Shown piece by piece: positions 1,895-64,000 of a DNA stretch of 64,000 nt. The stretch is from positions 258,513 to 322,512 of IMG/VR virus record IMGVR_UViG_3300037882_003354; one strand, given 5' to 3'. The translations under genes were made by a program, and so were the position numbers. The notes beneath the pieces were generated by a model, which saw nothing but the letters and a program-made list of their open reading frames with translations, searched no databases and was not told the origin of the DNA. Each line of letters begins with the position of its first letter. Position 1 is the first letter of the stretch.

Positions 1895-1900
1895 GATGCC

Positions 1901-2733: not shown

Positions 2734-2735
2734 GT

Positions 2736-3818: not shown

Positions 3819-3826
3819 TTATTTGA

Positions 3827-3836
3827 TAAATATTTA
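3827..3836. promoter_or_regulatory. palindromic TAAATATTTA, candidate bidirectional T4-like late promoter
   Basis: TAAATA on both strands in the 19-bp gap between divergent genes at 3818 (-) and 3838 (+). Confidence 0.55.
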
Positions 3837-3837
3837 C

Positions 3838-4089: not shown

Positions 4090-4092
4090 GAT

Positions 4093-4332: not shown

Positions 4333-4348
4333 GATTTTATTACCTTGA

Positions 4349-4813: not shown

Positions 4814-4840
4814 ATGTTAAACGTAGGTTAGTAAGTAATT

Positions 4841-4869
4841 AGTATACAGGAAAACAGGTGATCAGTCAA
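4841..4869 (-). promoter_or_regulatory. sigma70-type promoter
   Basis: TTGACT-17bp-TATACT upstream of the QueD-like gene. Confidence 0.75.
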
Positions 4870-4890
4870 GTTACTCCTGATCACCATGGT

Positions 4891-6528: not shown

Positions 6529-6538
6529 GTTTTATCGA

Positions 6539-7273: not shown

Positions 7274-7295
7274 GTTAATTTCCTTTGATTAAGTT

Positions 7296-7324
7296 AGTAT
7301 AGATATTTTTGTTGACCATGTCAA
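7296..7324 (-). promoter_or_regulatory. sigma70-type promoter
   Basis: TTGACA-17bp-TATACT. Confidence 0.8.
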
Positions 7325-33677: not shown

Positions 33678-36600
33678 TCAGGAGAACTTTTTCTTAAACT
33701 CTTCAAATTCTTTGCTGAGTTCCTTGATGGCCTCCACCAACAAAGGCACCACCTTCTCGTACTGAATGGTCCGGTAGTTCTCACCTGACTTGCTGTCACC
33801 GTTTTCATCACTATCAAACGGAGCCAACTTGACTGCCTCCGGCAATACAGCTTCCAATTCGTCGGCAAATAATCCAACTATGGATTCATCAGTGGAGAAC
33901 CCCAGCTGTTCAGCCAATTGATTGGGAGTGTACCGGATGCCAGTCAGGGCCCTGACCTTGGTCACAGCATCAGTAATCACACAAACATTGGTTTTCAATC
34001 TACGATCTGAAAAGAATGCTGTGATGTCACCCGTAGTTGTCAAAGCACCACTAAATTCATGACATTTTGCAACATACGGAATAGTACCTTCATCGATTGT
34101 GGCTGCGTTAGTTCCGACAAATCCAATGTAGCCCTGTCTTACTCCACCGCTGTGCGGGAAAAATTCAACATATCCAGACTTTGCACTAGTGCCAGTGCGT
34201 AGAGTTAAGAATCCGTTAGTTGTGCCAACCTGCGTGGTCAGCAATGTGGCATTTAGTGTGCCAGCAGTGCCAGACGCAGCAGCACCAATTCCCACGCTGG
34301 TAAATTGCAGGCTGCTGGTGCTGTTGATGCACAATATGCCAGTGCTGTCCACCCGGATGCGCTCTGCAGTACCAGCGCCAATCAACACAGTGCTTGACAA
34401 TCCATTCGAACCAATTAATGCACCAATGACAGTGTTATTGATACCAGTGGTTATTGCACAACCAGCACAGTATCCAATGCCAATATTGCGGGATCCGATG
34501 GTATTACTCACGAGCGCATTCCATCCAACGGCAGTGTTGTCAACCCCACTGGTGTTGGCGTTCAAGGCACAGGCACCTATTGCTGTGTTTGTAATACCAG
34601 TGATGTTGCACTGGAGTGCATAACTACCCACTGCGGTGTTTAAGCCACCATTTGTGTTTCTAAAGAGCGTATCGTTGCCAACGGCTGTGTTGCATCCGCC
34701 ACCGGTATTCTGCACAAGCGCACCAACTCCCAGGCCTGTATTGTAGCAGCCGACAATGTTGCATTTGAGTGTACCATACCCAATGGCCACGTTATTAACA
34801 CCGCCAGAGTTGCAGTAGAGTGCACCGACACCTTGTGCGGTGTTTCCACAGCCGTTAATGTTGAAGTATAGTGCACAAGCGCCAATAGCTGTATTGTTGT
34901 TGCCATATCCAGAGGGGCCAGGGCTGTTGTTGGAGAAAAGCGCATTATGACCCACGGCAGTGTTGTAGCTGTTTTCTATGGCGTTTGATAGCGCACCAGT
35001 GCCCACAGCCAAGTTGCCCCAGCCGGTGGTGTTGGCAGCCATGGCAAGGGCACCTATGGCCACATTGCCGTCGGTAGTGTTTTGCCTAAGCGCAAAACAA
35101 CCTATTGCGATATTACTGCAACCGATAATATTGTTAGAAAGTGCATTATATCCCACTGCAAAGTTGTTGTTGCCAATAGTATTTTTACCCAGTGAACTGG
35201 TGCCCTGTGCAAAGTTATTGCAACCAGTGGTGTTGTTGACCAGTGCATGGCATCCAGCTGCAAAATTATAGCAACCAGTCTGTGTCTTGTTACCGGCACA
35301 GCAACCTATGCCCACGTTGCCCAGTCCAGTGGTGTAGCCGAACACTGATCCCAGGCTGGTGGGAGTGGCCAGGGTGCTGGCGGCACTACTACCCACATAT
35401 CCTGCCGCTGACGAACCAGTGTAACCTGTACTTCCGATGTATCCAGGATCACCCCTGGAGCCCACCCATCCCACCGATCCAGTGTATCCCTGACTGCCCA
35501 CATAGCCACTACTGCCGGTGTAACCAATGCTGCCAGTGTATCCACGACTGCCAGTATATCCATTACTGCCGTTATAACCAACGTCACCCCGACTGCCGGT
35601 GTAACCCAGAACTCCCGATCCCGCATATCCAGTGGACGCTGATCCGGTGTAGCCAATGAGGCCACGACTGCCTGTGTATCCCAGCACACCCGATCCCACA
35701 TATCCCGTGGCAGCTGAGCCGGTGTAACCCACGCTGCCCTGGTATCCCACTCCTATGGAACCAGTGTATCCCAGTACAGCCGATCCCACATATCCAGCAC
35801 CGGCGGAGCCAGTATAACCCAGGCTACCACTATATCCAAATCCTGTGGAACCAGTGTAACCCAGACTGCCGGTGTATCCCTGTGTTCCTGAACCAGTGTA
35901 GCCAATGCCCTGCGAACCAGCATAACCCGCGCTGCCGCTGTATCCTATGCCCGACGAACCAGCATAACCGCGACTGCCAATGTAGCCAATGCTGCCAGTG
36001 TAACCAATTGATCCAGTGAAGCCAACACCCTGTGAACCAGCGTATCCTGAACTGCCAGTGTAACCTTGAGCGCCCGATCCTGTGTAGCCAACACCTTGTG
36101 AACCAGTGTAACCCTGGCTACCAGTGTAACCTTGGGCGCCCGATCCTGTGTACCCAAGCAGACCGCGACTGCCCACGTAGCCCACGCTGCCGGTGTAGCC
36201 CAGCACACTGGAACCGGAATATCCAATGCCCTGTGAACCGGTATATCCTGAACTGCCAGTGTAACCCTGTGGGCCCTGTACATTGCTTGCCGAGCCGGTG
36301 TATCCTATGCTGCCCACGTACCCTCGGCTGCCCGAGTAACCAGATGGTCCCACAATTTTACCAACATCAGAAAATCCTGACACATTACCCGGAGCAGTGG
36401 CATTGGAGTAGACCCATAAATTACCCGAATTCGCAGCAATATATCCATCGCCAATATTGATGGGACCAACGATGCTGGCGAACTGGCTGGTGGTGGCTTC
36501 AGTCACACTGCCCTTGATGTTGAGGCCAGAGCCCAGGGAACCAGTGTACCCAAAATCACCTCTAGAGCCACGACTGCCCACATATCCCGTGTCTCCCAGA

Positions 36601-39600
36601 CTGCCAGTATAACCAATGGATCCAGTATAACCTCGACTGCCGGTGTATCCCAGACTGCCGTCGTATCCTCTGCTGCCGGTATAACCCAGGGACCCAGTGT
36701 ATCCCTGTGGGCCTGACACTGTGCTGTTTGCACCTGAACTGCCAGCATACCCAATGCTGCCAACGTAACCAACTGATCCAGTATAGCCCAGGCTGCCGGT
36801 ATAGCCCAGGCTACCGGCATATCCTGAATCTCCGCGACTGCCAGTATAACCAATGGATCCGGTATAACCAATGCTACCGGTGTATCCTTGACTGCCCACA
36901 TACCCTCGACTGCCAGTGTATCCTTGACTGCCGGTATAACCAATTGACCCAGTGTAACCAGATGGTCCTACAATTACACCAACATCGATAAATCCTGACA
37001 CGTTACCTGGGGCACTGGAATTGGCATACACCCACAAGCGGCCAGTGTCTATTGCAATATATCCATCCCCCAGGGCAGGAGTACTTATGCTTGAAAGGTC
37101 TGACGACGTGAGCACGCTGCCCTTGATGTTAAGTCCAGTGCCAGCACTTCCGGTGTATCCAATACTACCGGTGTATCCTTGACTGCCAGTGTATCCTTGA
37201 CTGCCAGTATAGCCACGACTGCCAGTGTAGCCTATACTTCCAGTATACCCAATTGATCCTGTGTAACCAGTTGATCCCTGATATCCATTAACGCCCTGTG
37301 ATCCATCGTAACCAGCAGAACCAGTATAACCGCGGGATCCTGCATAGCCTGTGGATCCAACATAGCCAACAACGCCGGCGGTGTATGGTACTCCGTTGAT
37401 GCACAGGCCGTTGGCATCCACCTTGATACGCTCGCAAGTGCCAGCACCTATTAACACTGTGCATACACAGCCTGCACCAGCCTGCAACTGACCGATCACT
37501 GTGTTGCTGTGTCCAGTGGTTATGGCACATCCTGCACAAAACCCAATGCCAATGTTGTCGCTGGAAGTTGCACTGGCCAAGGAGTTGACACCGATGGCAA
37601 TATTGCAGTTGCCTGTACTGGAAACACCCAGACTGCCGAATCCCATGCTGATGTTGTCACAACCAGTGATGTTATAAATCAGCGCATTGCAACCCAGGGC
37701 AATATTGCTGTTGCCGAATTCGTTAAAAAATAATGAATTATATCCCATGGCAATATTATTATTGCCAGTGGTGTTACTGTTCAAGGATTGGTAACCCACT
37801 GCAAAGTTATCACAGCCAGTGGTGTTGCCTTGAAGTGCGCTGCCCCCAACGGCCGTGTTGCGTGTGCCCAGCGTGTTTCCGTAGAGAGCTCTGTGTCCAA
37901 TGGCTGTGTTATAACAACCATTGGTGTTGCTATAGAGTGCATATGCACCCTGAGCTGTGTTATTGCAACCAGTGGTATTGTTGTGAAGTGCACTGTAACC
38001 TTGTGCCACGTTATAACAACCGGTGGTATTGCTGAGGAGTGCACTACTGCCCTGAGCAGTATTATAACCACCAAGGGTGTTGTTTTGTAGTGAATTGGCA
38101 CCCTGGGCTGTGTTGAAGCAGCCAGTGGTGTTAGTAATCAGTGCAGCAGCACCTTGAGCTGTATTGTAGCAGCCAGAGGTATTACTATAGAGTACATTGT
38201 TACCCTGACCTGTGTTACCGCAGCCAGTGGTATTACTGTAAAGCGCAGAATAACCCTGGGCTGAGTTGTTACAACCGGTGGTATTACTATAGAGTGCATT
38301 AAAACCCAGAGCTGTGTTGCTGCTGCCCAGTGTGCTGCTGCGTAGTGCTTGGTGTCCGATGGCCGTGTTGTTGATGCCAGAGGTGCTGGATTTTAATGCT
38401 TCTGATCCAATGGCTATATTATAGCCGCCCACAGTATTGGTCACCAGTGCACACAGACCAATGGCTATGTTGTCAGTTCCTGTCTGTGTGGTATTACCCG
38501 AGCAGTAGCCCACGCTGATGTTGCCCAGGTTTGACGTGGTATAAGCATACACTGTGCCCAGTGATGTTGGCGTTGCAGGGCTAGTACTACCGGCACTGAA
38601 TAATGCACCGTTTTGATAAAGGTTGCCATTAAAATGTATGTCACAGCCAACCCCCAGGCCACCCACAATGGTCACGGCACCAGTGATGGTGGAAATGGCA
38701 TTGGCAGTAGACAGCACATTGACATTGGTGGCTGTGGCCGTGAATATGGGAGTACCCAGCGACCTTACAGCCAGGGTTCCTTCAGAGTTGATCAGGTCCA
38801 CACTCTGGCTGGTGCTGTTTTGTATGCTGATGCCCGCAGTATTTGATCCCTTGTTCTTGAAAAGTGCACTGGCAGTAAAACTGGGGAATGTCTGTGCGCT
38901 GTTGATTTCAAAGGTGGATTGATTGCCTGCATATACACCGCCACCCAGCCCCAGCCCGCCAACAACGATCACAGCACCAGTGGTTGTTGATGTGGCAATA
39001 GTGGAACTGGTGACTGCAATTTTGGGCATGGTCAGTATGCCACTGCTGGCCACGTAACTTAGGCCACTGTTGGCACCCAGGCTGAGATAATCTCCCACAG
39101 CCGAAGCCATGGTGGGATAATATACTGTGGAACTGGTATTGGTTATATTATTGACAAAAATCCTGTCGGCCTGGCCGGAAGTAACTGATCCAAAGATGCT
39201 GGAAGTACTAACCCAGGTGGCAGTGGTGCCCTGTGATTGCAACAAATAACCAGCTGTGCCTATGGGAATGAACGCAGTGGTGCTGTTTCCAGTCTGTATG
39301 GGTATGGAGCCAGTGGCGCCGCCCACCAGATTGACTGCAGAATTCACCTGCGCGGGTGCTGACCCGGTGTACCCAATGAGTCCGCGACTGCCTGCATAAC
39401 CAATGCTTCCAGTATAACCCTGAGAACCCACATAACCACGGCTGCCAGTGTACCCAATGCTGCCTGAGTAACCCAGGCCGCTTGAGCCGGTGTAGCCAGT
39501 GCTGCCCAGATATCCACGACTGCCAGTATAGCCTATGCTGCCGGTGTAGCCCAGACTGCCGGCACTGCCATTATATCCTGTGTCTCCTCGACTGCCTGTA

Positions 39601-39797
39601 TACCCGATTAATCCTCGAGATCCAATGTATCCCCTGGGGCCCTGGGGGCCCTGGGCGCCTTCAGTGCCCAGTATTGCTGCGGCTCTCGCCACAGTCAGTG
39701 TCAATTCAGTGCCGCCCTCCGTGACAATAAACAGCGTTTCCCCAACAGTGGGGCTGGTCAGTGGTATTAGAGATTCGAGTTCTTGACGGATGGGCAT
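33678..39797 (-). CDS. long tail fibre / adhesin with collagen-like and YadA-like repeats and C-terminal intramolecular chaperone (peptidase S74)
   Basis: (GYTGSx)n Gly-X-Y tracts, 14-residue NTAxGxxALxxNTTG repeats, SDRRLK auto-cleavage motif, YEKVVPLLVEAIKEL coil; ATAAATA at 39823-39829. Confidence 0.88.
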   Translation of the reverse strand: MPIRQELESLIPLTSPTVGETLFIVTEGGTELTLTVARAAAILGTEGAQGPQGPRGYIGSRGLIGYTGSRGDTGYNGSAGSLGYTGSIGYTGSRGYLGSTGYTGSSGLGYSGSIGYTGSRGYVGSQGYTGSIGYAGSRGLIGYTGSAPAQVNSAVNLVGGATGSIPIQTGNSTTAFIPIGTAGYLLQSQGTTATWVSTSSIFGSVTSGQADRIFVNNITNTSSTVYYPTMASAVGDYLSLGANSGLSYVASSGILTMPKIAVTSSTIATSTTTGAVIVVGGLGLGGGVYAGNQSTFEINSAQTFPSFTASALFKNKGSNTAGISIQNSTSQSVDLINSEGTLAVRSLGTPIFTATATNVNVLSTANAISTITGAVTIVGGLGVGCDIHFNGNLYQNGALFSAGSTSPATPTSLGTVYAYTTSNLGNISVGYCSGNTTQTGTDNIAIGLCALVTNTVGGYNIAIGSEALKSSTSGINNTAIGHQALRSSTLGSSNTALGFNALYSNTTGCNNSAQGYSALYSNTTGCGNTGQGNNVLYSNTSGCYNTAQGAAALITNTTGCFNTAQGANSLQNNTLGGYNTAQGSSALLSNTTGCYNVAQGYSALHNNTTGCNNTAQGAYALYSNTNGCYNTAIGHRALYGNTLGTRNTAVGGSALQGNTTGCDNFAVGYQSLNSNTTGNNNIAMGYNSLFFNEFGNSNIALGCNALIYNITGCDNISMGFGSLGVSSTGNCNIAIGVNSLASATSSDNIGIGFCAGCAITTGHSNTVIGQLQAGAGCVCTVLIGAGTCERIKVDANGLCINGVPYTAGVVGYVGSTGYAGSRGYTGSAGYDGSQGVNGYQGSTGYTGSIGYTGSIGYTGSRGYTGSQGYTGSQGYTGSIGYTGSAGTGLNIKGSVLTSSDLSSISTPALGDGYIAIDTGRLWVYANSSAPGNVSGFIDVGVIVGPSGYTGSIGYTGSQGYTGSRGYVGSQGYTGSIGYTGSIGYTGSRGDSGYAGSLGYTGSLGYTGSVGYVGSIGYAGSSGANSTVSGPQGYTGSLGYTGSRGYDGSLGYTGSRGYTGSIGYTGSLGDTGYVGSRGSRGDFGYTGSLGSGLNIKGSVTEATTSQFASIVGPINIGDGYIAANSGNLWVYSNATAPGNVSGFSDVGKIVGPSGYSGSRGYVGSIGYTGSASNVQGPQGYTGSSGYTGSQGIGYSGSSVLGYTGSVGYVGSRGLLGYTGSGAQGYTGSQGYTGSQGVGYTGSGAQGYTGSSGYAGSQGVGFTGSIGYTGSIGYIGSRGYAGSSGIGYSGSAGYAGSQGIGYTGSGTQGYTGSLGYTGSTGFGYSGSLGYTGSAGAGYVGSAVLGYTGSIGVGYQGSVGYTGSAATGYVGSGVLGYTGSRGLIGYTGSASTGYAGSGVLGYTGSRGDVGYNGSNGYTGSRGYTGSIGYTGSSGYVGSQGYTGSVGWVGSRGDPGYIGSTGYTGSSAAGYVGSSAASTLATPTSLGSVFGYTTGLGNVGIGCCAGNKTQTGCYNFAAGCHALVNNTTGCNNFAQGTSSLGKNTIGNNNFAVGYNALSNNIIGCSNIAIGCFALRQNTTDGNVAIGALAMAANTTGWGNLAVGTGALSNAIENSYNTAVGHNALFSNNSPGPSGYGNNNTAIGACALYFNINGCGNTAQGVGALYCNSGGVNNVAIGYGTLKCNIVGCYNTGLGVGALVQNTGGGCNTAVGNDTLFRNTNGGLNTAVGSYALQCNITGITNTAIGACALNANTSGVDNTAVGWNALVSNTIGSRNIGIGYCAGCAITTGINNTVIGALIGSNGLSSTVLIGAGTAERIRVDSTGILCINSTSSLQFTSVGIGAAASGTAGTLNATLLTTQVGTTNGFLTLRTGTSAKSGYVEFFPHSGGVRQGYIGFVGTNAATIDEGTIPYVAKCHEFSGALTTTGDITAFFSDRRLKTNVCVITDAVTKVRALTGIRYTPNQLAEQLGFSTDESIVGLFADELEAVLPEAVKLAPFDSDENGDSKSGENYRTIQYEKVVPLLVEAIKELSKEFEEFKKKFS
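35390..37370 (-). repeat. collagen-like GYTGSx coding repeats (about 18-bp unit) with a duplicated interrupting domain
   Basis: many imperfect CCAGTGTA/CCGGTGTA units; GLNIKGSV..GDGYIA..LWVY..APGNVSGF.DVG occurs twice; boundaries approximate. Confidence 0.85.
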
Positions 39798-51035: not shown

Positions 51036-51638
51036 ATGCATGTGTTAAGAACTTTACCCAGTCATGTGGCAGTTGCAGTGTCTGGCGGTGTGGACAGCCT
51101 GGTGCTGTTGCACTGGTTGAATCAACGTCGCCAGGTCACGGCAGTACACTACCGTCATGACAGTGATTTTGCACAGGAAGAATATTCATTTGTCAGCGAC
51201 TTCTGTCAAGAACGCGGCATCAACCTAATCACACAAACGCAGACACCCAGCGGCCAACATGGACTGAGTCAGGAAGAATATTGGAGGAGAGCACGATATG
51301 ATTTTTTTAAAAACATTACACTACCGGTATGCACTGGTCATACACTGGATGATGCAGTGGAGTGGTATCTATTTTCCTGTCTTAATGGTCAAGGCCATTA
51401 CATGGAATACAGTCACGCCAATGTGATCCGACCCTTCCTGGCCACTAGAAAATCTCAATTGATTGAGTATGCTCAGACCCATCAAATCGTCTGGTTGGAA
51501 GACCCCAGCAACCAAGATGTGGAGTTTGCCGCAAGAAACCGAATTCGTCATGACATTCTGCCCACCGCGCTCCTGATCAACCCAGGGCTACACAACATGG
51601 TGAGGAAACGAATTATTGAAAAATTAGGTCGGGTGTAA
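51036..51638 (+). CDS. tilS: tRNA(Ile)-lysidine synthetase, catalytic domain only
   Basis: AVSGGVDS PP-loop, RRARY, GHTLDDAVE, RPFL, EDPSN, RNRIRH. Confidence 0.9.
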   Translation: MHVLRTLPSHVAVAVSGGVDSLVLLHWLNQRRQVTAVHYRHDSDFAQEEYSFVSDFCQERGINLITQTQTPSGQHGLSQEEYWRRARYDFFKNITLPVCTGHTLDDAVEWYLFSCLNGQGHYMEYSHANVIRPFLATRKSQLIEYAQTHQIVWLEDPSNQDVEFAARNRIRHDILPTALLINPGLHNMVRKRIIEKLGRV

Positions 51639-51656
51639 TATACTAATAACTACACG

Positions 51657-52682
51657 ATGAAACCCATTCTACACATCCTATCCAACCCCTACGGCACAGT
51701 CAACACCAACAACAGAATTGATCCATTTTCCATGCTCACATGGAAATTCATCCATCACATGACGGCCAGGGGTTGGCCATGCATTCATTATAGCACACCG
51801 GGTTCCCAGGTGGATTGCATGCAGGTGCCGTGCCTGGACGAAATTGTGCCTGATCAGGAAACCAACGTCATCAGGTACAATGAACGTGCCGCTCATGAAA
51901 TCGCTCTGAGAAAGCAGCCTGGGGACATGATTCTGTGTTTTTATGGTGCTGGCAACGGCCAGGCGGCCCTGGCTCATCCAGACTGCAAAATCATTGAACC
52001 TGTGGTGTGTTATAATACCAAGGCAGTGTTTGCAGAATTCCGAGTGTTTGGCAGTTACGCACACATGCACATGTTCTACGGTGAACGAGGCATGCTCATG
52101 AACCCCAGTAGTTTTGATGCCATGATTCCCAATGCCATTACCGCCAGTGAATTTGATTTCTCTGAGCACAAGGATGATTATTTCTTGTATTTCGGTCGTG
52201 TGATCGAACACAAGGGGGTGCAGGTGGCCATTCAAGCCACTGAGGCCGCCGGCAAAAAATTAATCATTGCTGGCCCTGGCACATTGCAGAGCATGGGATA
52301 TCTGGAAACGCCCAGTCATGTGACCATGATGGGGCTGTGTGATGCTGATCAACGCAGGCAGTTGATGAGCGGGGCCCGAGCAATTTTAGGACCCACAATA
52401 TATGTGGAACCGTTTGGCAACATGGTGGCTGAAGGGTACATGAGTGGCACACCAGCCATCACCACCGACTGGGGTGGTTTTACTGACACAGTGGTTCAAG
52501 GTGTCACAGGATTCCGATGCAGAGAATTCCGCGAGTTCGTACAGGCAATTGATCAGATCGACAGGATCGACCCACATGCCTGCCGCAAATGGGCACTGGA
52601 CAATTACGAAGATTCAGTGGTGCATGACAAGTTTGATGCCTACCTGGAAAAAATTATAACCAAGGATTTTTACCGATCATGA
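51657..52682 (+). CDS. GT4 glycosyltransferase
   Basis: FGRVIEHKG, EPFGNMVAE, GTPAI, GVTGF. Confidence 0.88.
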   Translation: MKPILHILSNPYGTVNTNNRIDPFSMLTWKFIHHMTARGWPCIHYSTPGSQVDCMQVPCLDEIVPDQETNVIRYNERAAHEIALRKQPGDMILCFYGAGNGQAALAHPDCKIIEPVVCYNTKAVFAEFRVFGSYAHMHMFYGERGMLMNPSSFDAMIPNAITASEFDFSEHKDDYFLYFGRVIEHKGVQVAIQATEAAGKKLIIAGPGTLQSMGYLETPSHVTMMGLCDADQRRQLMSGARAILGPTIYVEPFGNMVAEGYMSGTPAITTDWGGFTDTVVQGVTGFRCREFREFVQAIDQIDRIDPHACRKWALDNYEDSVVHDKFDAYLEKIITKDFYRS

Positions 52683-53227
52683 ATGTACATTTGATAATTG
52701 TGGATGATTTCTATCAGGATCCTGACAGCATACGAAATTATGCATTGAGTCAGGAATTCTCTGTCAAAGGCAATTTTCCCGGCGCACGAACTGTGCCATA
52801 TCTGCCCGACGATGTCAAGACGGCCATCTCCCATCACATGCAATTTGCAGGTGGCGTGACCGATTGGTTGGTGGAGAGCGGATACACTGGAGCCTTCCAA
52901 CTGGCCACCGCCGGTGACAGGACCTGGATACACGCTGATCACTACAACATGTGGGCCGCTGTATGCTATTTGACTCCCAATGCACCGCACACCGGTGGCA
53001 CTGGATTTTTCAGGCACCGTGCCAGTGGTGATTACAACCGTGTGGATTCAGATCATGAAGGTCAGGATTATACCAAGTGGGATTTATTCGATGTGGTGGG
53101 CAACAAATACAACCGATTGGTCATCTATCGTTCAGATCTGTTTCACACCAGCCTGGATTATTTTGGCAGCACACCTGAAGATGGCAGATTGTTTCAAACA
53201 TTCTTTTTTAACACCAGACGGTATTAA
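52679..53227 (+). CDS. 2OG-Fe(II) oxygenase-like protein
   Basis: IVDDFY, WIHAD (HxD), YNRLVIY, distal His in LFH, RLFQTFF. Confidence 0.7.
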   Translation: MNVHLIIVDDFYQDPDSIRNYALSQEFSVKGNFPGARTVPYLPDDVKTAISHHMQFAGGVTDWLVESGYTGAFQLATAGDRTWIHADHYNMWAAVCYLTPNAPHTGGTGFFRHRASGDYNRVDSDHEGQDYTKWDLFDVVGNKYNRLVIYRSDLFHTSLDYFGSTPEDGRLFQTFFFNTRRY

Positions 53228-53228
53228 C

Positions 53229-53681
53229 ATGAAGGAACGGTTCAAACAATTTTATATGGATGTGGCTGAACGAACAGCCCAATTGTCGCGAGCCAAACGA
53301 TTGCAAGTGGGAAGTTTGGTGGTCAAAGATGACAGCATCATCAGTTACGGATATAATGGAACTCCCGCAGGCTGGGATAATGTGTGCGAAAATGTCATTG
53401 GATATGGCACTGATGGTATGCCAGTGTTGAAAACCCGACCAGAAGTGCTGCATGCAGAAATGAATTGTCTGATGAAGCTGGCCAAAGGCACAGGTTCGGG
53501 TGCCGGTGCCACCATGTTCATCACGCATCAGCCCTGTCTGGACTGTGCCAAGGGCATCTATCAGGCGGGCATCACATCTGTCTACTATCGTGACCATTAT
53601 AAAGACGACTACGGTATAAAATTTCTAAAACAATGTGGAGTTACTGTTGAACAAGTGGGAATAAATAATTTCGAGTCATAA
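53229..53681 (+). CDS. dCMP deaminase
   Basis: GYNG, HAE, PCLDC. Confidence 0.92.
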   Translation: MKERFKQFYMDVAERTAQLSRAKRLQVGSLVVKDDSIISYGYNGTPAGWDNVCENVIGYGTDGMPVLKTRPEVLHAEMNCLMKLAKGTGSGAGATMFITHQPCLDCAKGIYQAGITSVYYRDHYKDDYGIKFLKQCGVTVEQVGINNFES

Positions 53682-53693
53682 AGGATCTACTGT

Positions 53694-54428
53694 ATGTCCT
53701 CTGCCAAATTAAAATTTGACTGGTCCCGGCTGGATCGCACCAGCCTGTACAGTTTCATGTTATCCATTGGCGATGGCATCGTTAAAAAAGAACTCACCAT
53801 CAAGAAGTTTCACTCCAAGGTCTCCCGTCATCTCAAAACTCATCTGCCAGTTCGAGTGGTTAAACTCATGGACACCAAGGTGGAATCAGGCATTGTCTAC
53901 GTGGGCGGAGTGTATTACTGCGATGCTGATCAGGACCGGCAGAAATGCATCGAAGTTGTACTGGTTTATAATCCTGGCGATGCTGTCTTAAAGATGTCCC
54001 GGCTGAGATTCGGTCGATTGTCCATGTGCATTGCAGACACCATTCTGCATGAAATCATTCACATGCGTCAGTATCGACGCAGACGGTTCAAGGTCTTGCC
54101 AGAATACGCCAGTACTGCCGAAAAGACCGAGCAGCGTCAGGAACAAGGTTATCTGGGCTGCACTGATGAAATTGATGCATTTGCATTCAACATAGCCTGC
54201 GACCTGGTGGCTAGACATGGCGATGACGACCGAATGATAGTGCAACATCTCAATGAACACCAACGCAACAAACGCCGCCGATATGATTGCTGGAGAATGT
54301 ACTTGAAGGCGTTCAACCATGATCATGATCACATAATCATCAAGCGGCTGAAAAAGCGCGTCATCCGATATCTACCAGCCGCCAGAACGGGCAAACCCTA
54401 TCGAAATAAAGATTGGATCAACCGATAA
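53694..54428 (+). CDS. basic protein with HExxH zinc-binding motif
   Basis: LHEIIHMRQ and downstream DEIDA; ATAAATA at 53661-53667. Confidence 0.6.
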   Translation: MSSAKLKFDWSRLDRTSLYSFMLSIGDGIVKKELTIKKFHSKVSRHLKTHLPVRVVKLMDTKVESGIVYVGGVYYCDADQDRQKCIEVVLVYNPGDAVLKMSRLRFGRLSMCIADTILHEIIHMRQYRRRRFKVLPEYASTAEKTEQRQEQGYLGCTDEIDAFAFNIACDLVARHGDDDRMIVQHLNEHQRNKRRRYDCWRMYLKAFNHDHDHIIIKRLKKRVIRYLPAARTGKPYRNKDWINR

Positions 54429-54467
54429 TAACATTGACTGCACGGCTGACTTCTGCTACTATATGGC

Positions 54468-54707
54468 ATGAAGATTGTTGCCACTAATAGTCAAGTACGC
54501 GCCATCAAGCAGGGTGATCCTAATTTTATCATTCAGGGACACGATGGTTTTACTCGAACACCGCGGGCAGGATTTGAAATTAATCTGGCCTGTCCTCAAG
54601 AATATCGCATGATAATTGGCATGTGTCTAAATAATGGGTGGCTCAAGCCAGTGGCGCATGTTGCAGAACGAGAATTACTCTTTATGGGTCTAACCAAGGA
54701 AAATTAA
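54468..54707 (+). CDS. hypothetical protein
   Basis: follows TTGACT-17bp-TACTAT (54434-54462). Confidence 0.7.
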   Translation: MKIVATNSQVRAIKQGDPNFIIQGHDGFTRTPRAGFEINLACPQEYRMIIGMCLNNGWLKPVAHVAERELLFMGLTKEN

Positions 54708-54712
54708 AAAAT

Positions 54713-55396
54713 ATGAATCAAGAAAAAAATCTATCACAGGTGATCAGGGAACGTATCCAGCAAGCTGGAGTTCGATTCCACGCTAATGATAACATTGCAG
54801 AGTTCATTAACGAAGGCGAGCTTGACACTCTTGTTGACGAAGTGGCCTGCCAATTTCAAGGCGTGCTCAACAGCCTGGTGATTGATACTGAACATGACCA
54901 TAACACTCGGGACACTGCCCGTCGTGTGGCCAAGATGTTCATCAAGGAGACATTTGGCGGTCGCTATCGCCCTGAGCCCAAGATCACAGCGTTTCCCAAC
55001 CTGGGGTATCAAAGCCTGTACACCACAGGTCCCATTACCATTCGTTCAGTCTGTGCGCATCACTTTCAGAACATTGTGGGGCACTGCTGGGTGGGCATCA
55101 TTCCTGAAAAGGAAGTGATTGGCCTGAGCAAGTTCAATCGTCTGGTGCATCACATCTGTGAGCGTCCGCAAATTCAAGAAGAGATGACCACGCAAATTGC
55201 CGATGCCCTGATGAAATATGCCAAGACAGAAAACATTGCCATTGTGGTCAAAGCCGAGCATCATTGCATGACAGCTCGTGGAGTTCGAGAGCATGCAAAT
55301 GACATGGTCACAGCCATCATGAAGGGCAGATTCATGGAAGATCCTTCCTTGAAGAAAGAATTCTATGACATTCTAAATCTCAGTGGCACTCACTGA
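54713..55396 (+). CDS. folE: GTP cyclohydrolase I
   Basis: TARRVAKM, SVCAHH, IGLSKFNR, RPQIQE, HHCMTARGV. Confidence 0.95.
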   Translation: MNQEKNLSQVIRERIQQAGVRFHANDNIAEFINEGELDTLVDEVACQFQGVLNSLVIDTEHDHNTRDTARRVAKMFIKETFGGRYRPEPKITAFPNLGYQSLYTTGPITIRSVCAHHFQNIVGHCWVGIIPEKEVIGLSKFNRLVHHICERPQIQEEMTTQIADALMKYAKTENIAIVVKAEHHCMTARGVREHANDMVTAIMKGRFMEDPSLKKEFYDILNLSGTH

Positions 55397-59625: not shown

Positions 59626-59694
59626 ATCACAGTTGACTTTCTGATCCGTTTGCTGTATAATAATAACTATTGTACAACAAGTAGGAGTGAAAAC

Positions 59695-60915
59695 ATGGTC
59701 ACAGCAGTCAAGAAAGCCCCAGCCAAGGCAGCAGCCAAGGCGCCTGCCAAGCGTATCACCAGCCAGACTGTTCGCGAACACGCCCGGCGTGATCCCAGCC
59801 CCAAGTGGGAAGGTGCGCAGGACTGGAGCAGCCAGGAATTCGCCAGCCGCTACCGCGATGCCATGAAGTACTACAGCATGGAGAGTTCGGCCAAGGAACT
59901 CAAGCCCCAGATCATCAACTGGATGGGCCGCAACGACTATACCAAGGATCAGATCCAGGCGTTCAAGGACACCAAGGACTGGCGTGCCAACCTGACCATG
60001 GGTGCTGTGGCCGCCTGCCTGTTGCGTGGCATGCCGGCTGTTCATGGTGGGTTCAACCAGGGTCGCAGCACCGCCGACTGGTTGCGCAAGAGCATCGACG
60101 AAGTGCTGGAACAAGGCAAGCACGACGAAGCACCTGTTGATGAAGTTAAAAAGGCTCGTGTGGAAGTGCCTGTGGTCACCATTCAGGATCGAATCCGTGA
60201 TCAGGCGGTGCAGATGAGCGAAGAGATTGATCAGGCCATCGATTCCTGGATCCTGGATTCTGATGCATTTGATCCCCGGGCATTCAAGATGGTGAGCCTG
60301 TTGCGCGGCAAGGGCGCCAAGGCTGCACAAAGCCGCTACATCAAGGGTTTCTTTCAGCGTGGCTATGCCGAGTTGCTGGAACTGGCCGGCGGCAATGCTG
60401 ATGAGCAATTGCGTGAAGGCTATCAGCACAAGAGCCGTAAGAACATCAAGAAGATGATCGACTTCTACGAAAGCATCATGGCCGCTTGCGATCAGATCGC
60501 ACAAGAAGCCAAGATTCTCAAGAAGCCACGTGCCAGCAAGGTCAAGCCCGCTGAAGAACTGGTCAAGAAGTTGAAGTTCAAGACTGTAGACGACAAGCTG
60601 GGTGTGGTGTCAGTGCCGCCAGCTGGCCTGATTGGTGCTCAGGGTGCTGTGGTGTTCAACGTGAAAACTCGCAAACTGGGCATGTACATCAGCAAAAGTT
60701 CCGCTGGACTCAGCGTCAAGGGCACCAGCATCACAGAATTCACTGACCGGAGCTTCCAGCGCACTCTGCGCAAACCTGCGGAACAACTCAAGGAGTTCCG
60801 TGAACAGAACACGCAGAAGCGAATTGAAACCTGGTTTGGTAAGATCAAGAGCGTGGAAACTGCACTGACTGGGCGATTGAACGAAGACGTCATGATTCTC
60901 AAGATATTCAAGTAG
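59695..60915 (+). CDS. hypothetical early protein with K/A/P-rich N-terminus
   Basis: TTGACT-17bp-TATAAT (59633-59661), AGGAG RBS, strongly C-ending codons. Confidence 0.82.
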   Translation: MVTAVKKAPAKAAAKAPAKRITSQTVREHARRDPSPKWEGAQDWSSQEFASRYRDAMKYYSMESSAKELKPQIINWMGRNDYTKDQIQAFKDTKDWRANLTMGAVAACLLRGMPAVHGGFNQGRSTADWLRKSIDEVLEQGKHDEAPVDEVKKARVEVPVVTIQDRIRDQAVQMSEEIDQAIDSWILDSDAFDPRAFKMVSLLRGKGAKAAQSRYIKGFFQRGYAELLELAGGNADEQLREGYQHKSRKNIKKMIDFYESIMAACDQIAQEAKILKKPRASKVKPAEELVKKLKFKTVDDKLGVVSVPPAGLIGAQGAVVFNVKTRKLGMYISKSSAGLSVKGTSITEFTDRSFQRTLRKPAEQLKEFREQNTQKRIETWFGKIKSVETALTGRLNEDVMILKIFK

Positions 60916-60976
60916 TATACCCGCGTAAATACTGAAGTCCAGTAAATAGTCATGTGTACTGTTTTACACATATGTC

Positions 60977-62203
60977 ATGGACTTAGTATTTTTTATTATT
61001 TTCTCATTGACAGCAACAATATTCATTCGTAACATTTTATGCGGAATATTGATTAAACTCACACCGCGGAAAGTTTTTAAACCTCCCACTGAATTACCAC
61101 AAGTCAGCGTGGTTATCCCCTCCTTCAATGAAGGGGCGGGTATATATTACACCTTGGAGTCGTTGTCCAGGGTGGACTACCCAGCAAATTTATTTGATGT
61201 CACTGTGGTTGACGACTGTTCAACTGACGACACAGTTGAGTGGATTAACAAAGGCATCACAGAATTTAAGAATATTAAAATCAAATGCATTTCCCAGCCG
61301 GTCAATAGTGGAAAACAGCAAGCCCTTATCAAAGGGTTCCACCATACTACTGGTGACGTGTTTGTTTTGTTCGATAGTGATGTTATTGTTGATCCCAATG
61401 TGCTCAAGGGATTTGTAAGAGAATTGCAGGATCCCGGACTGGGTATTGTGGGAGCGTCCTGTGGCATATATAGCCCAAACAGAGATTTAATCTCCCAGGG
61501 ATATACCTCGGTATTTTATACACTCCACGAATTCTTAAAGCAAGTTGAGTCATCCATCGGCTGTGTTTCGGTTGTGGACGGCAAGGCCATGGGATTTCGA
61601 AGATCGGTCTATGCAGAAATGATACCAGTCATTTCAAATCAAACATGGCTCGATCTTAAAATAATGGCCGGTGAAGATCGATATATCACTCATCAACTGA
61701 CTTTACGCGGCTATAGATCTAAGGTTATACTGGAACGGGTTAATACTAGTGCACCCCCCACGTTGACATCGTTGTACAAACAACAATTGCGATGGAAACG
61801 TTCGGGATTTAGAAATTGGTTCTGGACCATGTGCGATTTGCCAGGTCATTTTGCTAAAATCGGGGTGTGGAAAACAATATCAATATTGTTACCACGCACT
61901 GTGTATCTAATGGTTCCACTCATATATATGCAAATTATTTTTAGTTCAGGAATAATTGGATTGCTGCAAGCACAAATGGCATTTATCGTCATTATACTTT
62001 TTTTAAAATTAATCATGAACTTACATGCCAGTTTCTACCAGCCGGATCAAGTCATACGCAATCCCTTGGTTTCAGCATTAACATTGAGCACCTGGATGTT
62101 TATCGATCTCTTAATCACAACTCCGCTTGCCGTACTCACCATGGACGAGGGTGGGTGGGGTACACGAAGTTTACCGACTTCATCAACCCTATCAAAATCA
62201 TGA
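60977..62203 (+). CDS. processive membrane GT2 polysaccharide synthase (hyaluronan synthase / NodC / chitin synthase type)
   Basis: IPSFNE, VDDCS, FDSD, GEDR, QQLRW, C-terminal TMs and WGTR; two TAAATA boxes at 60926 and 60943. Confidence 0.88.
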   Translation: MDLVFFIIFSLTATIFIRNILCGILIKLTPRKVFKPPTELPQVSVVIPSFNEGAGIYYTLESLSRVDYPANLFDVTVVDDCSTDDTVEWINKGITEFKNIKIKCISQPVNSGKQQALIKGFHHTTGDVFVLFDSDVIVDPNVLKGFVRELQDPGLGIVGASCGIYSPNRDLISQGYTSVFYTLHEFLKQVESSIGCVSVVDGKAMGFRRSVYAEMIPVISNQTWLDLKIMAGEDRYITHQLTLRGYRSKVILERVNTSAPPTLTSLYKQQLRWKRSGFRNWFWTMCDLPGHFAKIGVWKTISILLPRTVYLMVPLIYMQIIFSSGIIGLLQAQMAFIVIILFLKLIMNLHASFYQPDQVIRNPLVSALTLSTWMFIDLLITTPLAVLTMDEGGWGTRSLPTSSTLSKS

Positions 62204-63243
62204 AAAAACAAATACTTTACGCATATCAAAAAATATCATTTTTTGGAATTTTTTTAATACTTGCCGGCATAATTTGGTATGCTACCACCTTCGTCTTGAT
62301 GATCGACGGTATTGGTAAATGGGCAGCCCCCTTGATACTGTCACCCTCGCAAGAAAAAGTGTTATCATTTCAACCACAAGTGGCAAACATCGAAGCATCC
62401 ATGATCAGGCAAAAAATTGAATTGGCTGCGGCAGAGTCCACACTGAAATCTGTCACCATTCAATTGGAACGTCTGAATTCCCTGCAATCAAAATTAAACT
62501 CAGCCGTCAGTGCAGAGTCCACACAATTATTAGACACCAGCAAAATGATTTCAAATGTGCTGGTTAACAAGCGACAAAATATTGCAGACACCCAACAAGT
62601 GATCACTGATGCAAAATTTTTACTAGCACAAGTCGATCAAGAATTGAAAGTGGGACTTATTACAAAGGATCAAGCTGCGCAGCGGCGTATTGCATTACAA
62701 TCGGCGATGAACAACGCCACTGATGCAAAATCACAAGAGATCTTACTACAACATCAATCAAAACAATTGTCATCGGGCGCCGGCACACTGCTGGGACAGG
62801 CAACTTCCTTGTCTGCCTTGTCCTCAGTTAAATTAAATGCTGAACTACAGGCCATGTTCGATCAATTAACTATTCAATTAGTAACCTTAAAATCAACGAT
62901 TGCCGGACTTGGCACCACCATTGCTGAAGGAACCAGAATTTTGGATGTCGCAAAAACAACTCCTTACTATAGAGCATTGCGTGGTGAGGTCAATGTTGCA
63001 TTTGTGCCATATGGTTCTTTTAAACGCATACATGTAGGTGATCCAATATATGATTGCGTTCTCACTATTTTAATTTGTTCAAAAGTTGGAGAAATTACTG
63101 CCATGTATGATGCCGAAGAATATGCGCGACACCCTTTTATTAGAAATGATCTTAGAGGACGACTCGTTGAAATTGCATATACAAACAAAAAATCTGCCAA
63201 CTCACAGGTGGTTTTTGTTGGACACAGTCCGTTGATATTTTGA
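62200..63243 (+). CDS. membrane-fusion (HlyD-like periplasmic adaptor) protein, putative
   Basis: single N-terminal TM, long coiled coil, C-terminal AFVP..IHVGD..VGEI beta domain. Confidence 0.6.
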   Translation: MKKQILYAYQKISFFGIFLILAGIIWYATTFVLMIDGIGKWAAPLILSPSQEKVLSFQPQVANIEASMIRQKIELAAAESTLKSVTIQLERLNSLQSKLNSAVSAESTQLLDTSKMISNVLVNKRQNIADTQQVITDAKFLLAQVDQELKVGLITKDQAAQRRIALQSAMNNATDAKSQEILLQHQSKQLSSGAGTLLGQATSLSALSSVKLNAELQAMFDQLTIQLVTLKSTIAGLGTTIAEGTRILDVAKTTPYYRALRGEVNVAFVPYGSFKRIHVGDPIYDCVLTILICSKVGEITAMYDAEEYARHPFIRNDLRGRLVEIAYTNKKSANSQVVFVGHSPLIF

Positions 63244-63253
63244 GATTTAATCC

Positions 63254-64000
63254 ATGAAGAAATACAACTTATTATTGCTCTTGTTCCCACTTGCGGTATA
63301 TGCTGATGAATCACAGATGGCTTGCAATCTGGAACAATCGAAATCTGAAGTCAGGGCTGCCATCCTGGCGGCGCCCTCTGCATTTGGATCAATAGGGGAT
63401 GCATCGACCACTGAGAAAAACATCACCCTGGGGATTTCACAGTCATTGAGTGGTCGACGACAGGCATCCTTGATGCGTCAGGCAGCCTCAGCCCGGTGCG
63501 ATGCCATACGAGTGGCGCTGCAACTGGACACCTATGAGCAGTGGGCGCAACGACAGGTGCAGCGGGACGGCGCCCTGGAGGAGTTGCGACTGATCGAGCA
63601 AGCCTTGATCATGGCCCGGCAAAACCTAGATGTACTGGCTCCACAATTGGCTGCAAACACCATCACTTTGACCGAGCATGCGCAAGCCGTCGCGGCTGTG
63701 GCAGAAATAGAAAAACGACAGGCCCTGCTGATGAAAACGCTGGCTGTAGTCATGGTGACACCACCAGAAACCAACGTGGCGACCTTGATACAATCCCTGC
63801 AGACACATGAAGCTCTGGCTGCTGAACTAGCAGCCAGATCGCAGGCTGAAACAGGCTGGGACACTGTGATATCGGCTGGTGCTCGCCAGTCTGTCAGCGG
63901 TGGCGGCAGCGGTCAATTGTTTGCCACCATTGGATTCAAGCGATCGTTCGGGTATTCTGCTGCACAAGATGCAGCCAGGGCAGTGGGCACCCAGACGGCA
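63254..64000 (+). CDS. TolC-like outer-membrane channel, putative; runs off the right edge
   Basis: Not in the ORF track; manual translation MKKYNLLLLLFPLAVYA-DESQ..., open to the window end; helix / beta-strand (NITLGISQSL) / long helices / beta-hairpin (WDTVISAG..LFATIGFKRSF). Confidence 0.55.
   Translation, partial: MKKYNLLLLLFPLAVYADESQMACNLEQSKSEVRAAILAAPSAFGSIGDASTTEKNITLGISQSLSGRRQASLMRQAASARCDAIRVALQLDTYEQWAQRQVQRDGALEELRLIEQALIMARQNLDVLAPQLAANTITLTEHAQAVAAVAEIEKRQALLMKTLAVVMVTPPETNVATLIQSLQTHEALAAELAARSQAETGWDTVISAGARQSVSGGGSGQLFATIGFKRSFGYSAAQDAARAVGTQTA

Follow-up and report, generated by a model that had tools for sequence, protein, structure and literature searches.

A cassette of three genes at the end of a jumbo phage contig is likely to encode a self-contained, synthase-dependent system that secretes a polysaccharide across the host envelope. 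The carrier is a T4-superfamily phage of about 322 kb, its phage context being given by PolB, tail fibres and PHROG hits; the window referred to throughout is the 64,000-nucleotide stretch that was analysed of this contig, Ga0394681_078533 from sample 3300037882. The features of the cassette are listed here by window position.

60926-60931 and 60943-60948, plus strand: two TAAATA boxes within the 61-nt spacer before the synthase gene, likely a phage promoter element.
60977..62203, plus strand: gene 1 (GT2), a 408-residue membrane-embedded GT2 resembling hyaluronan synthase (HAS), NodC and chitin synthase, assigned from Pfam, NCBIfam and PDB matches and motifs; its processivity is inferred.
62200..63243, plus strand: gene 2, a 347-residue inner-membrane-anchored periplasmic adaptor-like protein, assigned from an AF2 model, Foldseek and synteny.
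63254..64000, plus strand: gene 3, the first 249 codons of a secreted compact TolC-like outer-membrane channel, assigned from its translation and from AF2 and Foldseek analysis of a proxy.

Architecture of the cassette and predicted folds

The stop codon of gene 1 and the start codon of gene 2 overlap in an ATGA (62200-62203), and gene 3 starts 10 nt past the stop of gene 2. The TAAATA sequence ahead of them is not over-represented in the window as a whole (25 copies observed against 18.7 expected); yet 16 of the 25 precede an ORF start on the same strand by no more than 70 nt, where 1.2 would be expected, and these include copies at both tail-fibre genes (39797 and 33633). Such clustering just ahead of same-strand starts is the behaviour of a phage promoter box. 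The second box and the AGTAAATAGTCATGTG that follows it are invariant in the related loci L006 and L009. The T4-type TATAAATA was also considered as a promoter and rejected, since each strand of the window has a single copy and the positional signal resides in the shorter TAAATA. The GC content is 0.41 for gene 1 and 0.40 for gene 2, compared with 0.55 for gene 3, 0.54 for the gene upstream and 0.47 for the window.

Gene 1 matches Glycos_transf_2 (7.8e-30) and Glyco_trans_2_3 in Pfam. Its NCBIfam matches are to NodC (TIGR04242; 1.3e-27, 96.7 bits) and PgaC (TIGR03937; 1e-26, 93.9 bits), which fall short of the curated equivalog cut-offs of 550 and 422 bits; the protein is thus a member of neither family, and with scores so far under the cut-offs its substrate cannot be read from its sequence. 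The best relatives of known structure are Xenopus HAS1 (8smm, 4.5e-16) and the Chlorella-virus HAS (7sp7), with an alignment to HAS1 residues 215-507 that spans GEDR, QQLRW and GWGT. The UDP-binding D, the DxD and the G/T-E-D catalytic loop expected of a GT-A fold are all present (VVDD77, DSD133 and GEDR232), as are the hallmarks of a processive synthase, namely Q(Q/R)xRW (QQLRW269), a C-terminal WGT(R) (WGTR394) and membrane helices after the catalytic domain; the hydrophobic blocks comprise residues 1-26 and 303-355. The GT2 motifs are kept in 17 cassette synthases from other loci. The phage GenBank collection holds only distant GT2 matches to gene 1, at 30% identity or less.

Gene 2 begins at the ATG at 62200, not at the GTG at 62155, and so has 347 residues. 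Its AF2 model (pLDDT 89) has a TM helix (residues 2-35), helices at 52-150, 156-197 and 204-253, and a beta domain at 264-340. The TM anchor and the helical hairpin of about 99 residues satisfy the membrane-anchor and long-hairpin test for an adaptor, and the model predicts a PAP-like fold. The best Foldseek match is EmrA (4tko, E 4e-6 over 322 columns), followed by MacA, EmrAB-TolC and HlyD. This prediction is tempered by TM-scores of just 0.15-0.3 and by intermixed coiled-coil decoys, with generic coiled coils scoring nearly as well. The model has a single beta domain of around 80 residues and lacks the lipoyl and beta-barrel (+MP) set of classical adaptors. The tip of classical adaptors carries an RxxxLxxxxxxS/T motif that binds the OMF (PMC3391258); in gene 2, R162 and L166 fit this RLS pattern, while the hydroxyl residue, T174, lies at i+12 rather than i+11. 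This tip, ELxxxLITxDQAxxR, is the most conserved stretch of the hairpin.

Gene 3 runs off the window edge, which is why the ORF lister missed it. Its remaining 93 codons are found at the beginning of the contig, which is circular (L029:100-381), for a total of 342 residues. A full-length proxy that is 96% identical to gene 3 (P0062) was modelled by AF2 with a pLDDT of 95.4 and a pTM of 0.85. The protein has a signal peptide and two beta hairpins, or four strands per protomer (42-47/56-64 and 202-213/221-230 in the proxy), with helices of up to 69 residues; the signal peptide and the twofold helix/beta-hairpin/long-helix repeat meet the test for an OMF. The top 39 Foldseek matches of the proxy are all OMFs (OprJ, SilC, CusC, TolC, CmeC, OprM, VceC, OprN and MtrE), with E-values of 6e-11 to 2e-8, apart from one OprM chain at 7.5e-6, and TMq of 0.38-0.56. 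The OMF-like fold of gene 3 is nonetheless a model prediction for the monomer, and the homotrimer of OMFs, with its 12-strand barrel and alpha-tunnel, is inferred. The family is compact (342 residues in gene 3 against 410-490 in known OMFs), has two invariant cysteines and, clustered at 50% identity, counts 455 representatives.

Sequence and profile searches of genes 2 and 3 against Pfam, NCBIfam, the PDB, PHROGs and PADLOC gave nothing meaningful. For gene 2 there was no Pfam (including HlyD-family), NCBIfam, PHROG or PDB sequence match, a 41-sequence profile against the PDB was also empty, and tblastn against the phage GenBank collection gave no match. Pfam OEP (PF02321) was undetected in gene 3 and its proxy and only weakly matched in two of 113 family members (best 4e-5); the gene 3 profile found nothing significant in the PDB, and BFVD contained no viral protein with this fold.

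The first-pass annotation had described three tightly coupled genes behind two late-type TAAATA boxes, the first two genes being AT-richer than the gene upstream; D, DxD, GEDR, QQLRW and WGTR in gene 1; a TM helix, long coiled coil and beta domain in gene 2; and, in a gene 3 absent from the ORF track, a signal peptide with long helices and beta-strands. All of this held, except that the label "late-type" held only in part: the promoter-like placement of the boxes is supported, and late expression from them is plausible but no more than suggested, the timing being inferred. The annotation would have been refuted had genes 2 and 3 not folded as MFP and TolC proteins, and the PAP-like and OMF-like models show that this is not the case.

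Phage residence, synteny and module exchange

The cassette resides in the phage genome. A 99-nt overlap joins the end of the contig to its start, so that the contig is circular, and the closure is in-frame inside gene 3, restoring one intact ORF of 342 residues. A cassette lies between the same phage genes in four other assemblies; among them the independent assemblies L006 (ENA), L007 (JGI) and L008 (Logan) have flanking phage genes 92-95% identical to those of the window. L010, from another sample, is 97% identical to the window across the junction of genes 2 and 3. The in-frame closure and the shared phage neighbours lead us to reject a chimeric end join, which the first-pass annotation had named as a possible refutation. 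The cassette lies within a variable region and adjoins a 6.9-kb insertion.

The gene order is conserved well beyond this contig. Of the metagenome loci that carry gene 2, 36 are 9 kb or longer; a GT2 gene is present in 35 of these, in each case adjoining gene 2, and gene 3 in 29. The complete GT2-gene 2-gene 3 triad occurs in nine Burkholderiaceae genomes and in Myxococcota, as well as on the phage-like contigs L005, L022 and L023 and on a MAG contig of unassigned origin (L025). Intact triads with overlapping start and stop codons are found in at least four distinct phage-like lineages (the window, the L006 type, L005/L022 and L023). In the Burkholderiaceae, Myxococcota and metagenome loci the triad carries no annotation, and at those triad loci for which genes were called, none of them was noted as an ABC, RND or MFS partner. 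A search of IMG/VR for genes 2 and 3 returned only this contig and L022, and the phage GenBank collection contained no nucleotide match to the 6-kb region.

Comparison of related phages shows that the synthase and adaptor are exchanged as a pair between near-identical genomes: against flanks of 92-95% identity, the alleles are only 31% (GT2) and 28% (gene 2) identical, and gene 3 is 72% identical. Swapping of the same pair is likewise seen among Ralstonia strains. In one close relative, L009, the synthase and adaptor are deleted, and the cassette is thus dispensable. The retention of the locus while its alleles are exchanged among close phages points to selection on function rather than decay; the dN/dS of gene 3, measured against a 97% identical relative, is 0.23.

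The proposed machine, its product and rival explanations

We propose that the inner-membrane GT2 would polymerize UDP-sugars and pass the chain, as it grows, through a membrane channel at its own C-terminus, by analogy with hyaluronan synthases of class I, NodC and chitin synthases. The TM-anchored gene 2 product would assemble around the synthase, its helical hairpin reaching some 150 Å into the periplasm, and would dock tip-to-tip with the helical tunnel, about 100 Å long, of a trimeric gene 3 channel; the polymer would then exit the infected Gram-negative host with no BcsC/PgaA-type porin involved. The first-pass reading of a phage-encoded HAS/NodC-type synthase with membrane-fusion-like and TolC-like partners is supported when protein family, fold, gene order and assembly are tested. 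We rate the complete system as likely: its physical assembly, the processivity of the synthase, the product and the timing are inferred, with neither an experiment nor a multimer model behind them, and the criterion for a tripartite secretion system is met only by gene overlap and synteny, functional dependence on the OMF being inferred. What the phage would gain is conjecture, most likely remodelling of the infected surface, such as receptor masking against other phages or altered aggregation; the superinfection exclusion, grazer protection and aggregation put forward in the first-pass annotation also remain inference.

The product is probably a beta-glycan containing GlcNAc, although this is an inference, as it was when first suggested, and the substrate is untested. 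More tentatively, it may be a hyaluronan-like chain of GlcNAc and GlcA, for which there are only contextual hints. This chain is suggested because a UDP-glucose dehydrogenase (UGDH) gene is paired with the triad in the nearest synthase clade, where it lies directly upstream of GT2 (L023), and in all complete Burkholderiaceae loci; GH18 genes close to the triad in some clades are a further hint.

The alternative that survives best keeps the same machine and assigns it a GlcNAc-only product, chitin or a chito-oligosaccharide, possibly deacetylated later, in place of a GlcA glycosaminoglycan. This remains possible. In its favour, NodC is the top NCBIfam match of gene 1, and many homologues bear Pfam Chitin_synth_2 and the automatic JGI name "N-acetylglucosaminyltransferase". 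GH18 genes adjoin six of the nine Burkholderiaceae loci, and a PIG-L deacetylase gene lies beside the Myxococcota synthase. UGDH, moreover, is present in only three of the 36 long metagenome loci, and tblastn detected no copy of it either in the window or in the contig's first 10.6 kb; these amount to 74 kb read, and the other ~248 kb were not covered, so a UGDH elsewhere in the phage is not excluded. A search for UGDH on viral contigs, from which 80 of 128 loci were returned, gave none from this contig and none with the triad. Against a GlcNAc-only product stand the UGDH pairings described above, the identity of the best solved relatives of gene 1 as hyaluronan synthases, and the name "hyaluronan synthase" given by JGI to its closest relatives, although this last is only an automatic label.

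A second alternative is that the cassette is passenger DNA, recently taken from a host and intact but without a role in infection. The atypical GC content of genes 1 and 2 relative to the window, the location in a variable region beside the insertion and the loss of synthase and adaptor from L009 are compatible with this. We consider it unlikely, given the intact, overlapping triads in at least four phage-like lineages, the TAAATA box shared with other phage genes, the dN/dS of 0.23 for gene 3, and the retention of the locus in close phages that swap its alleles.

It is still less likely that genes 2 and 3 form an efflux or type-1-secretion-like duct for another cargo, or that gene 3 alone blocks phages at the surface, with GT2 modifying a lipid-linked glycan as GtrB does. 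PAP and OMF folds are classically parts of efflux systems or T1SS, and the sole PHROG match of gene 1 is to GtrB-like O-antigen conversion; however, that match is confined to the generic GT-A domain (residues 42-191), the QQLRW, WGTR and C-terminal multi-helix block aligned to the HAS channel are hallmarks of a processive synthase, GT2 and gene 2 adjoin in nearly all the long loci, and no pump was noted at any triad locus with gene calls. Finally, a misjoin of bacterial DNA onto the phage contig, for which the extreme end position and the steps in GC content at 60950 and 63250 might speak, is all but excluded by the in-frame closure into a single ORF, the shared phage neighbours in L006, L007 and L008, and the junction matched in L010.

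Relation to known systems and implications

A synthase paired with HlyD-like and TolC proteins has precedents (PMC13438883; PMC8892547): BgsA-BgsB-TolC of Sinorhizobium meliloti, a mixed-linkage beta-glucan system (PMC13438883), and the cyanobacterial "tripartite" system of cellulose synthase, HlyD-like and TolC-like proteins (Maeda 2018, cited in PMC8892547). Like these, the phage cassette combines an inner-membrane, putatively processive GT2, a TM-anchored HlyD-like adaptor encoded alongside and a TolC-type duct, with no TPR/beta-barrel porin. BgsA and the cyanobacterial synthases, however, are BcsA-like glucan synthases under c-di-GMP control, whereas the phage synthase is HAS/NodC-like, and Pfam and NCBIfam scans found no c-di-GMP-binding domain in any of the three proteins. 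While BgsAB uses the housekeeping TolC, the phage cassette has a dedicated channel, encoded in cis, which is shorter than TolC by about 100 residues. The adaptor and channel of the cassette come from unannotated families without a Pfam match, and the genes reside in a phage.

With class I HAS (CvHAS 7sp7, Xenopus HAS1 8smm and streptococcal HasA) the synthase shares the D, DxD, GEDR/GDDR, Q(Q/R)xRW and WGT motifs and the C-terminal channel helices, and the UGDH pairing in related triad loci recalls hasA with the hasB UGDH; the match, however, reaches only E 1e-16 to 1e-12 over some 300 residues, and the product is untested. Chlorovirus HAS is a viral precedent for coating a host with polymer. 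Chloroviruses infect algae and so need no outer-membrane export parts, and Streptococcus has no outer membrane. Gene 1 resembles NodC and PgaC/IcaA in size (about 400-420 residues) and topology, but neither the NodIJ ABC exporter of NodC nor the PgaA/PgaB export of PNAG has a counterpart at the cassette. Gene 3 shares the fold and the four-strand, long-helix repeat topology of TolC, OprM and CusC, from which its compactness, invariant cysteines and lack of detectable sequence-family membership set it apart; gene 2 has the TM anchor, long hairpin and beta domain of EmrA, MacA and HlyD, but only one small beta domain, a tip inexact to RLS and no sequence-family membership. The serotype-converting GtrABC proteins likewise include a phage-encoded GT2 that alters the host surface, an effect only inferred for the cassette, but Gtr enzymes are non-processive, add single sugars to O-antigen via a lipid carrier and have no export duct. 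The cassette is a further form of the known synthase-adaptor-TolC design, and probably its first phage case in the literature and databases searched; the first-pass statement that no characterized phage example was known agrees with our searches of the literature, PHROGs, BFVD and phage GenBank.

An active cassette would be the equivalent, in a bacteriophage, of hyaluronan and chitin production by chloroviruses. In that case the virus would supply, beyond the enzyme itself, a complete export apparatus that spans the envelope, one part of which, an outer-membrane protein, would have to be assembled during infection. The triad also reveals an uncharacterized bacterial exopolysaccharide system, in which a HAS-like synthase is joined by a novel adaptor and by a compact OMF that is also novel, in Burkholderiaceae, Myxococcota and many soil metagenome contigs; it would add to the few synthase-dependent secretion architectures on record and may, with only three genes, serve as a compact module for making polymers. 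The swapping of alleles in phages and Ralstonia makes this a candidate locus for phage-host or phage-phage conflict at the cell surface. A bolder reading, which we hold only as a possibility, is that infection by a lytic jumbo phage causes the Gram-negative host to assemble a trans-envelope nanomachine from phage genes and to cover itself in a hyaluronan- or chitin-like polymer, the swapped glycan acting as a rapidly evolving weapon or shield, for instance in competition with other phages. If true, compact TolC-like channels and adaptors dedicated to polysaccharide export would also form a widespread family that has yet to be named.

Organization of the cassette and its TAAATA boxes

The window is the final 64 kb of JGI contig 3300037882|Ga0394681_078533 (IMGVR_UViG_3300037882_003354, 322,512 bp), and its end coincides with the end of the contig. 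A family-B DNA polymerase, 51% identical to that of Sinorhizobium phage Phosso and 44% to those of the CBB/GAP32 group, together with a tail fibre, a Lon-like protease and further PHROG families, marks the element as a jumbo phage of the T4 superfamily. The tail fibre, which is 2,039 aa long and contains collagen-like repeats (33678-39797, minus strand), matches many PHROG tail-fibre families. The gene run at 51036-55396 is typical of DNA hypermodification (QueC-like ATP_bind_3, GT1 glycosyltransferase, DUF6445, dCMP deaminase and GTP cyclohydrolase I); in relatives, PTPS is encoded at a greater distance downstream of it. The cassette consists of three genes on one strand, behind a 61-nt spacer.

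Genes at the cassette locus
59650-60915: gene directly upstream, phrog_11903, a family present in PA5oct-like and other large phages
60977-62203: gene 1, GT2 synthase, 408 aa
62200 (start ATG): gene 2, putative adaptor, 347 aa, with an ATGA overlap with the gene 1 stop
63254 (start), running past the window edge: gene 3, putative channel, with a Sec-type signal peptide

The start of gene 2 is backed by the gene caller and by homologues of 346-352 aa. The GC content is 0.41 for gene 1, 0.40 for gene 2 and 0.55 for gene 3; the upstream gene has 0.54 and the window as a whole 0.47. Both TAAATA boxes noted upstream of the cassette are present. Over the whole window this hexamer shows no overall enrichment (25 copies); 16 of these copies precede an ORF start on their own strand by no more than 70 nt, where 1.2 are expected (e.g. 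39823, 39860, 33661, 27337 and 54628). The ORFs behind the boxes include both tail-fibre genes and also DNA-metabolism genes; we therefore read TAAATA, from its position relative to ORF starts, as a probable phage promoter box, without assigning it a temporal class, and as a candidate -10-like element. The full T4 late consensus, TATAAATA, occurs as a single copy per strand in the window. The observations of the first-pass annotation, namely three coupled genes, synthase motifs in the first of them, TAAATA boxes and a shift in GC, are confirmed.

Predicted architecture of the three products

Gene 1 matches Pfam Glycos_transf_2 and Glyco_trans_2_3, and in NCBIfam it scores below threshold against NodC (97 bits) and PgaC (94 bits). 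Among solved structures it is closest to class I hyaluronan synthases (HAS), namely Xenopus HAS1 (8smm, E 4.5e-16) and Chlorella-virus HAS (7sp7), and the alignments span GEDR, QQLRW and the C-terminal GWGT. The motifs VVDD77, DSD133, GEDR232, QQLRW269 and WGTR394, which are kept in 17 cassette synthases of other loci, are accompanied by hydrophobic blocks at residues 1-26 and 303-355.

Neither gene 2 nor gene 3 has a sequence match in Pfam, NCBIfam, PHROG, PADLOC or PDB, profiles included. The AF2 model of gene 2 (41 homologues, pLDDT 89) predicts a transmembrane helix at residues 2-35 followed by a short strand, a helix of 99 residues whose return path through two helices completes a hairpin of about 150 Å, and a beta domain of around 80 residues. 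The top Foldseek match is the periplasmic adaptor EmrA (E 4e-6, 322 columns), with MacA, EmrAB-TolC and HlyD also among the matches. The TM-scores are low and generic coiled coils are mixed in; the hairpin tip, ELxxxLITxDQAxxR, is the best-conserved helical stretch but is not an exact match to the canonical RLS motif. For these reasons we call the predicted gene 2 protein adaptor-like by architecture only; membership of the HlyD family is not demonstrated.

Gene 3 was modelled through a full-length proxy, P0062, which shares 328 of 342 residues with the reconstructed protein (113 homologues; pLDDT 95.4, pTM 0.85). The model has two beta hairpins with long helices between and after them, the twofold repeat of outer-membrane factors (OMFs). 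The best 39 Foldseek matches are all OMFs (OprJ, SilC, CusC, TolC, CmeC, OprM, VceC, OprN and MtrE), with E values of 6e-11 to 2e-8 (7.5e-6 for one OprM chain) and TMq of 0.38-0.56. In length, gene 3 falls some 100 residues short of known OMFs, and it fails Pfam OEP, to which just two of the 113 relatives have a weak match; it also carries two invariant cysteines. The dN/dS of 0.23 against a 97%-identical relative is only weak evidence of constraint, because it rests on 24 differences. The first-pass reading of a synthase, an adaptor-like protein and a TolC-like channel would have been refuted had genes 2 and 3 not adopted such folds; the models support it, while role and chemistry remain inferred.

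Linkage to the phage genome, distribution and turnover

A 20-mer probe from the 3′ part of the 97%-identical gene 3 relative was found within the opening 270 nt of the contig to which the window belongs. The contig end (window 63902-64000) is identical to the contig start (positions 1-99), and joining the two across this exact 99-nt overlap restores one intact gene 3 of 342 aa. It follows that the 322-kb assembly is circular or circularly permuted, with its break inside gene 3. In three independent assemblies of relatives (L006, ENA; L007, JGI; L008, Logan), the phage genes ahead of the window cassette recur at 92-95% identity and are followed by a GT2-gene 2-gene 3 triad and then by the phage genes ClpP, PTPS, UvdE and SOD. 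Past a phage-specific insertion of about 6.9 kb, the contig start again matches the sequence that follows the cassette in L006, at 84-98% identity. A chimeric join of foreign DNA to the phage contig, which the first-pass annotation had allowed would refute it, is rejected on the contig closure, the independent assemblies and this downstream match.

The insertion (contig positions ~400-7300), absent from the close relative L006, encodes a 276-aa protein matching Pfam Acb3, a CBASS inhibitor (E 7e-45; positions 3886-4716; on the circular map, some 4 kb past gene 3). This variable segment may be a host-interaction or anti-defence hotspot; the Acb3 homologue fits such a role and proves nothing.

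Triads on other contigs
L005, 94.6 kb, phage-like: GT1-GT2-gene 2 ... gene 3 ... UDP-glucose dehydrogenase (UGDH)
L022, IMG/VR, 20 kb: GT2-gene 2-gene 3
L023/L024, 103 kb, phage-like: UGDH-GT2-gene 2-gene 3, contiguous
L025, 8.8-kb MAG contig of unassigned origin: GT2-gene 2-gene 3, then a glycoside hydrolase

Neighbours of the triad match PHROG families in L005, L022 and L023; two neighbours scanned in L025 gave no PHROG match. The window GT2 and gene 2 are nearest to the L023 type (52% and 47%) and gene 3 to the L006 type (69-72%). Between the window and L006 the GT2 and gene 2 are only 31% and 28% identical, within flanks of 92-95% identity; the synthase and adaptor pair has therefore been replaced within an otherwise conserved phage genome, in agreement with the GC step. 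In another close relative, L009 (9962-10855), a deletion from around codon 6 of an L006-type GT2 to around codon 60 of gene 3, with its junction at a CACA microhomology, leaves a 284-aa gene 3 remnant without a signal peptide. This loss shows that the cassette is accessory and turns over among phages.

UGDH relatives occur on at least 128 viral contigs in IMG/VR, several of them 190-358 kb in length. None of the 80 inspected carries a triad within 6 kb of UGDH, and phage UGDH thus mostly serves other purposes.

In bacteria, the gene 2 family (61 clusters, every one named 'hypothetical') is found in chromosomes of Ralstonia, Paraburkholderia, Cupriavidus, Caballeronia and Trinickia, and the gene 3 family has 455 representatives at 50% clustering. 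Every complete Burkholderiaceae locus has UGDH, GT2, gene 2 and gene 3; frequent additions are a GH18 hydrolase, a protein of 167 aa and a neighbour of the GGDEF or EAL type. Among Ralstonia species, identity is 93-99% for UGDH and GGDEF on the flanks but only 22-65% for the GT2, gene 2 and gene 3 core, in which gene order is permuted; the locus is hypervariable in the manner usual for surface-glycan loci, and repeats the pattern seen in the phages. At one Ralstonia chromosomal site compared between two strains, one lacks gene 3, GT2, GH18 and GGDEF. A Myxococcota locus (L027:3154-9569) encodes GT2, WbqC and a PIG-L deacetylase, and on the opposite strand gene 2-family (hhalign 99.9%) and gene 3-family (98.2%) proteins. 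Its divergently encoded proteins of 366, 336 (gene 2 family), 344 (gene 3 family) and 228 aa belong to no known family, and those of 366 and 228 aa are possibly further parts of this variant.

A metagenome scan returned 79 loci, and counts were made on the 36 of at least 9 kb. GT2 is present in 35 and a detectable gene 3 in 29, whereas UGDH is found in only three and GH18 in four. The triad is thus the conserved core, with precursor and trimming enzymes clade-specific. No ABC, RND or MFS pump was noted beside the triad among called genes, in those loci with gene calls. A large clade of soil metagenome contigs (L123-L170, GC 0.54-0.61) has a fixed GT2-gene 2-gene 3 order, no UGDH nearby and a gene 2 about 28-30% identical to that of the window; the triad is widespread and unannotated.

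Proposed mechanism and product

The best-supported reading of the cassette is that it probably encodes a tripartite synthase-dependent secretion system, with assembly and export inferred. In this system the GT2 would polymerise the chain and translocate it across the inner membrane, and the adaptor and channel would form a closed conduit through the periplasm and outer membrane; from helix lengths in the models, a hairpin of ~150 Å and a tunnel of ~100 Å would roughly span the periplasm. The same synthase-adaptor-TolC design, with glucan products, is established by experiment for BgsA-BgsB-TolC in S. meliloti (PMC13438883) and for a cellulose synthase of cyanobacteria whose partners are HlyD-like and TolC-like (Maeda 2018, cited in PMC8892547).

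The chemistry of the product is inferred from similarity and neighbours. The resemblance to NodC, chitin synthase and HAS and the GH18 and PIG-L neighbours hint at GlcNAc; UGDH, which adjoins the closest synthase clade and is present in all complete Burkholderiaceae loci, hints at GlcA. However, UGDH was not found in the 74 kb of phage sequence examined and is absent from most triads, which counts against GlcA. We rank a GlcNAc/GlcA (hyaluronan-like) chain first, with our confidence in it clearly short of even; a chain of GlcNAc only is possible and is placed slightly below it. Whichever chain the tripartite system may export, the benefit to the phage is conjecture, and could lie in receptor masking or in protection or aggregation of the infected cell.

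In the literature searched we found no report of such a system with a HAS/NodC-type synthase and nothing on these adaptor and channel families; nor did we find a phage-borne precedent. The system is a variation on a known synthase-adaptor-TolC design and, as far as our searches reach, the first one carried by a phage.
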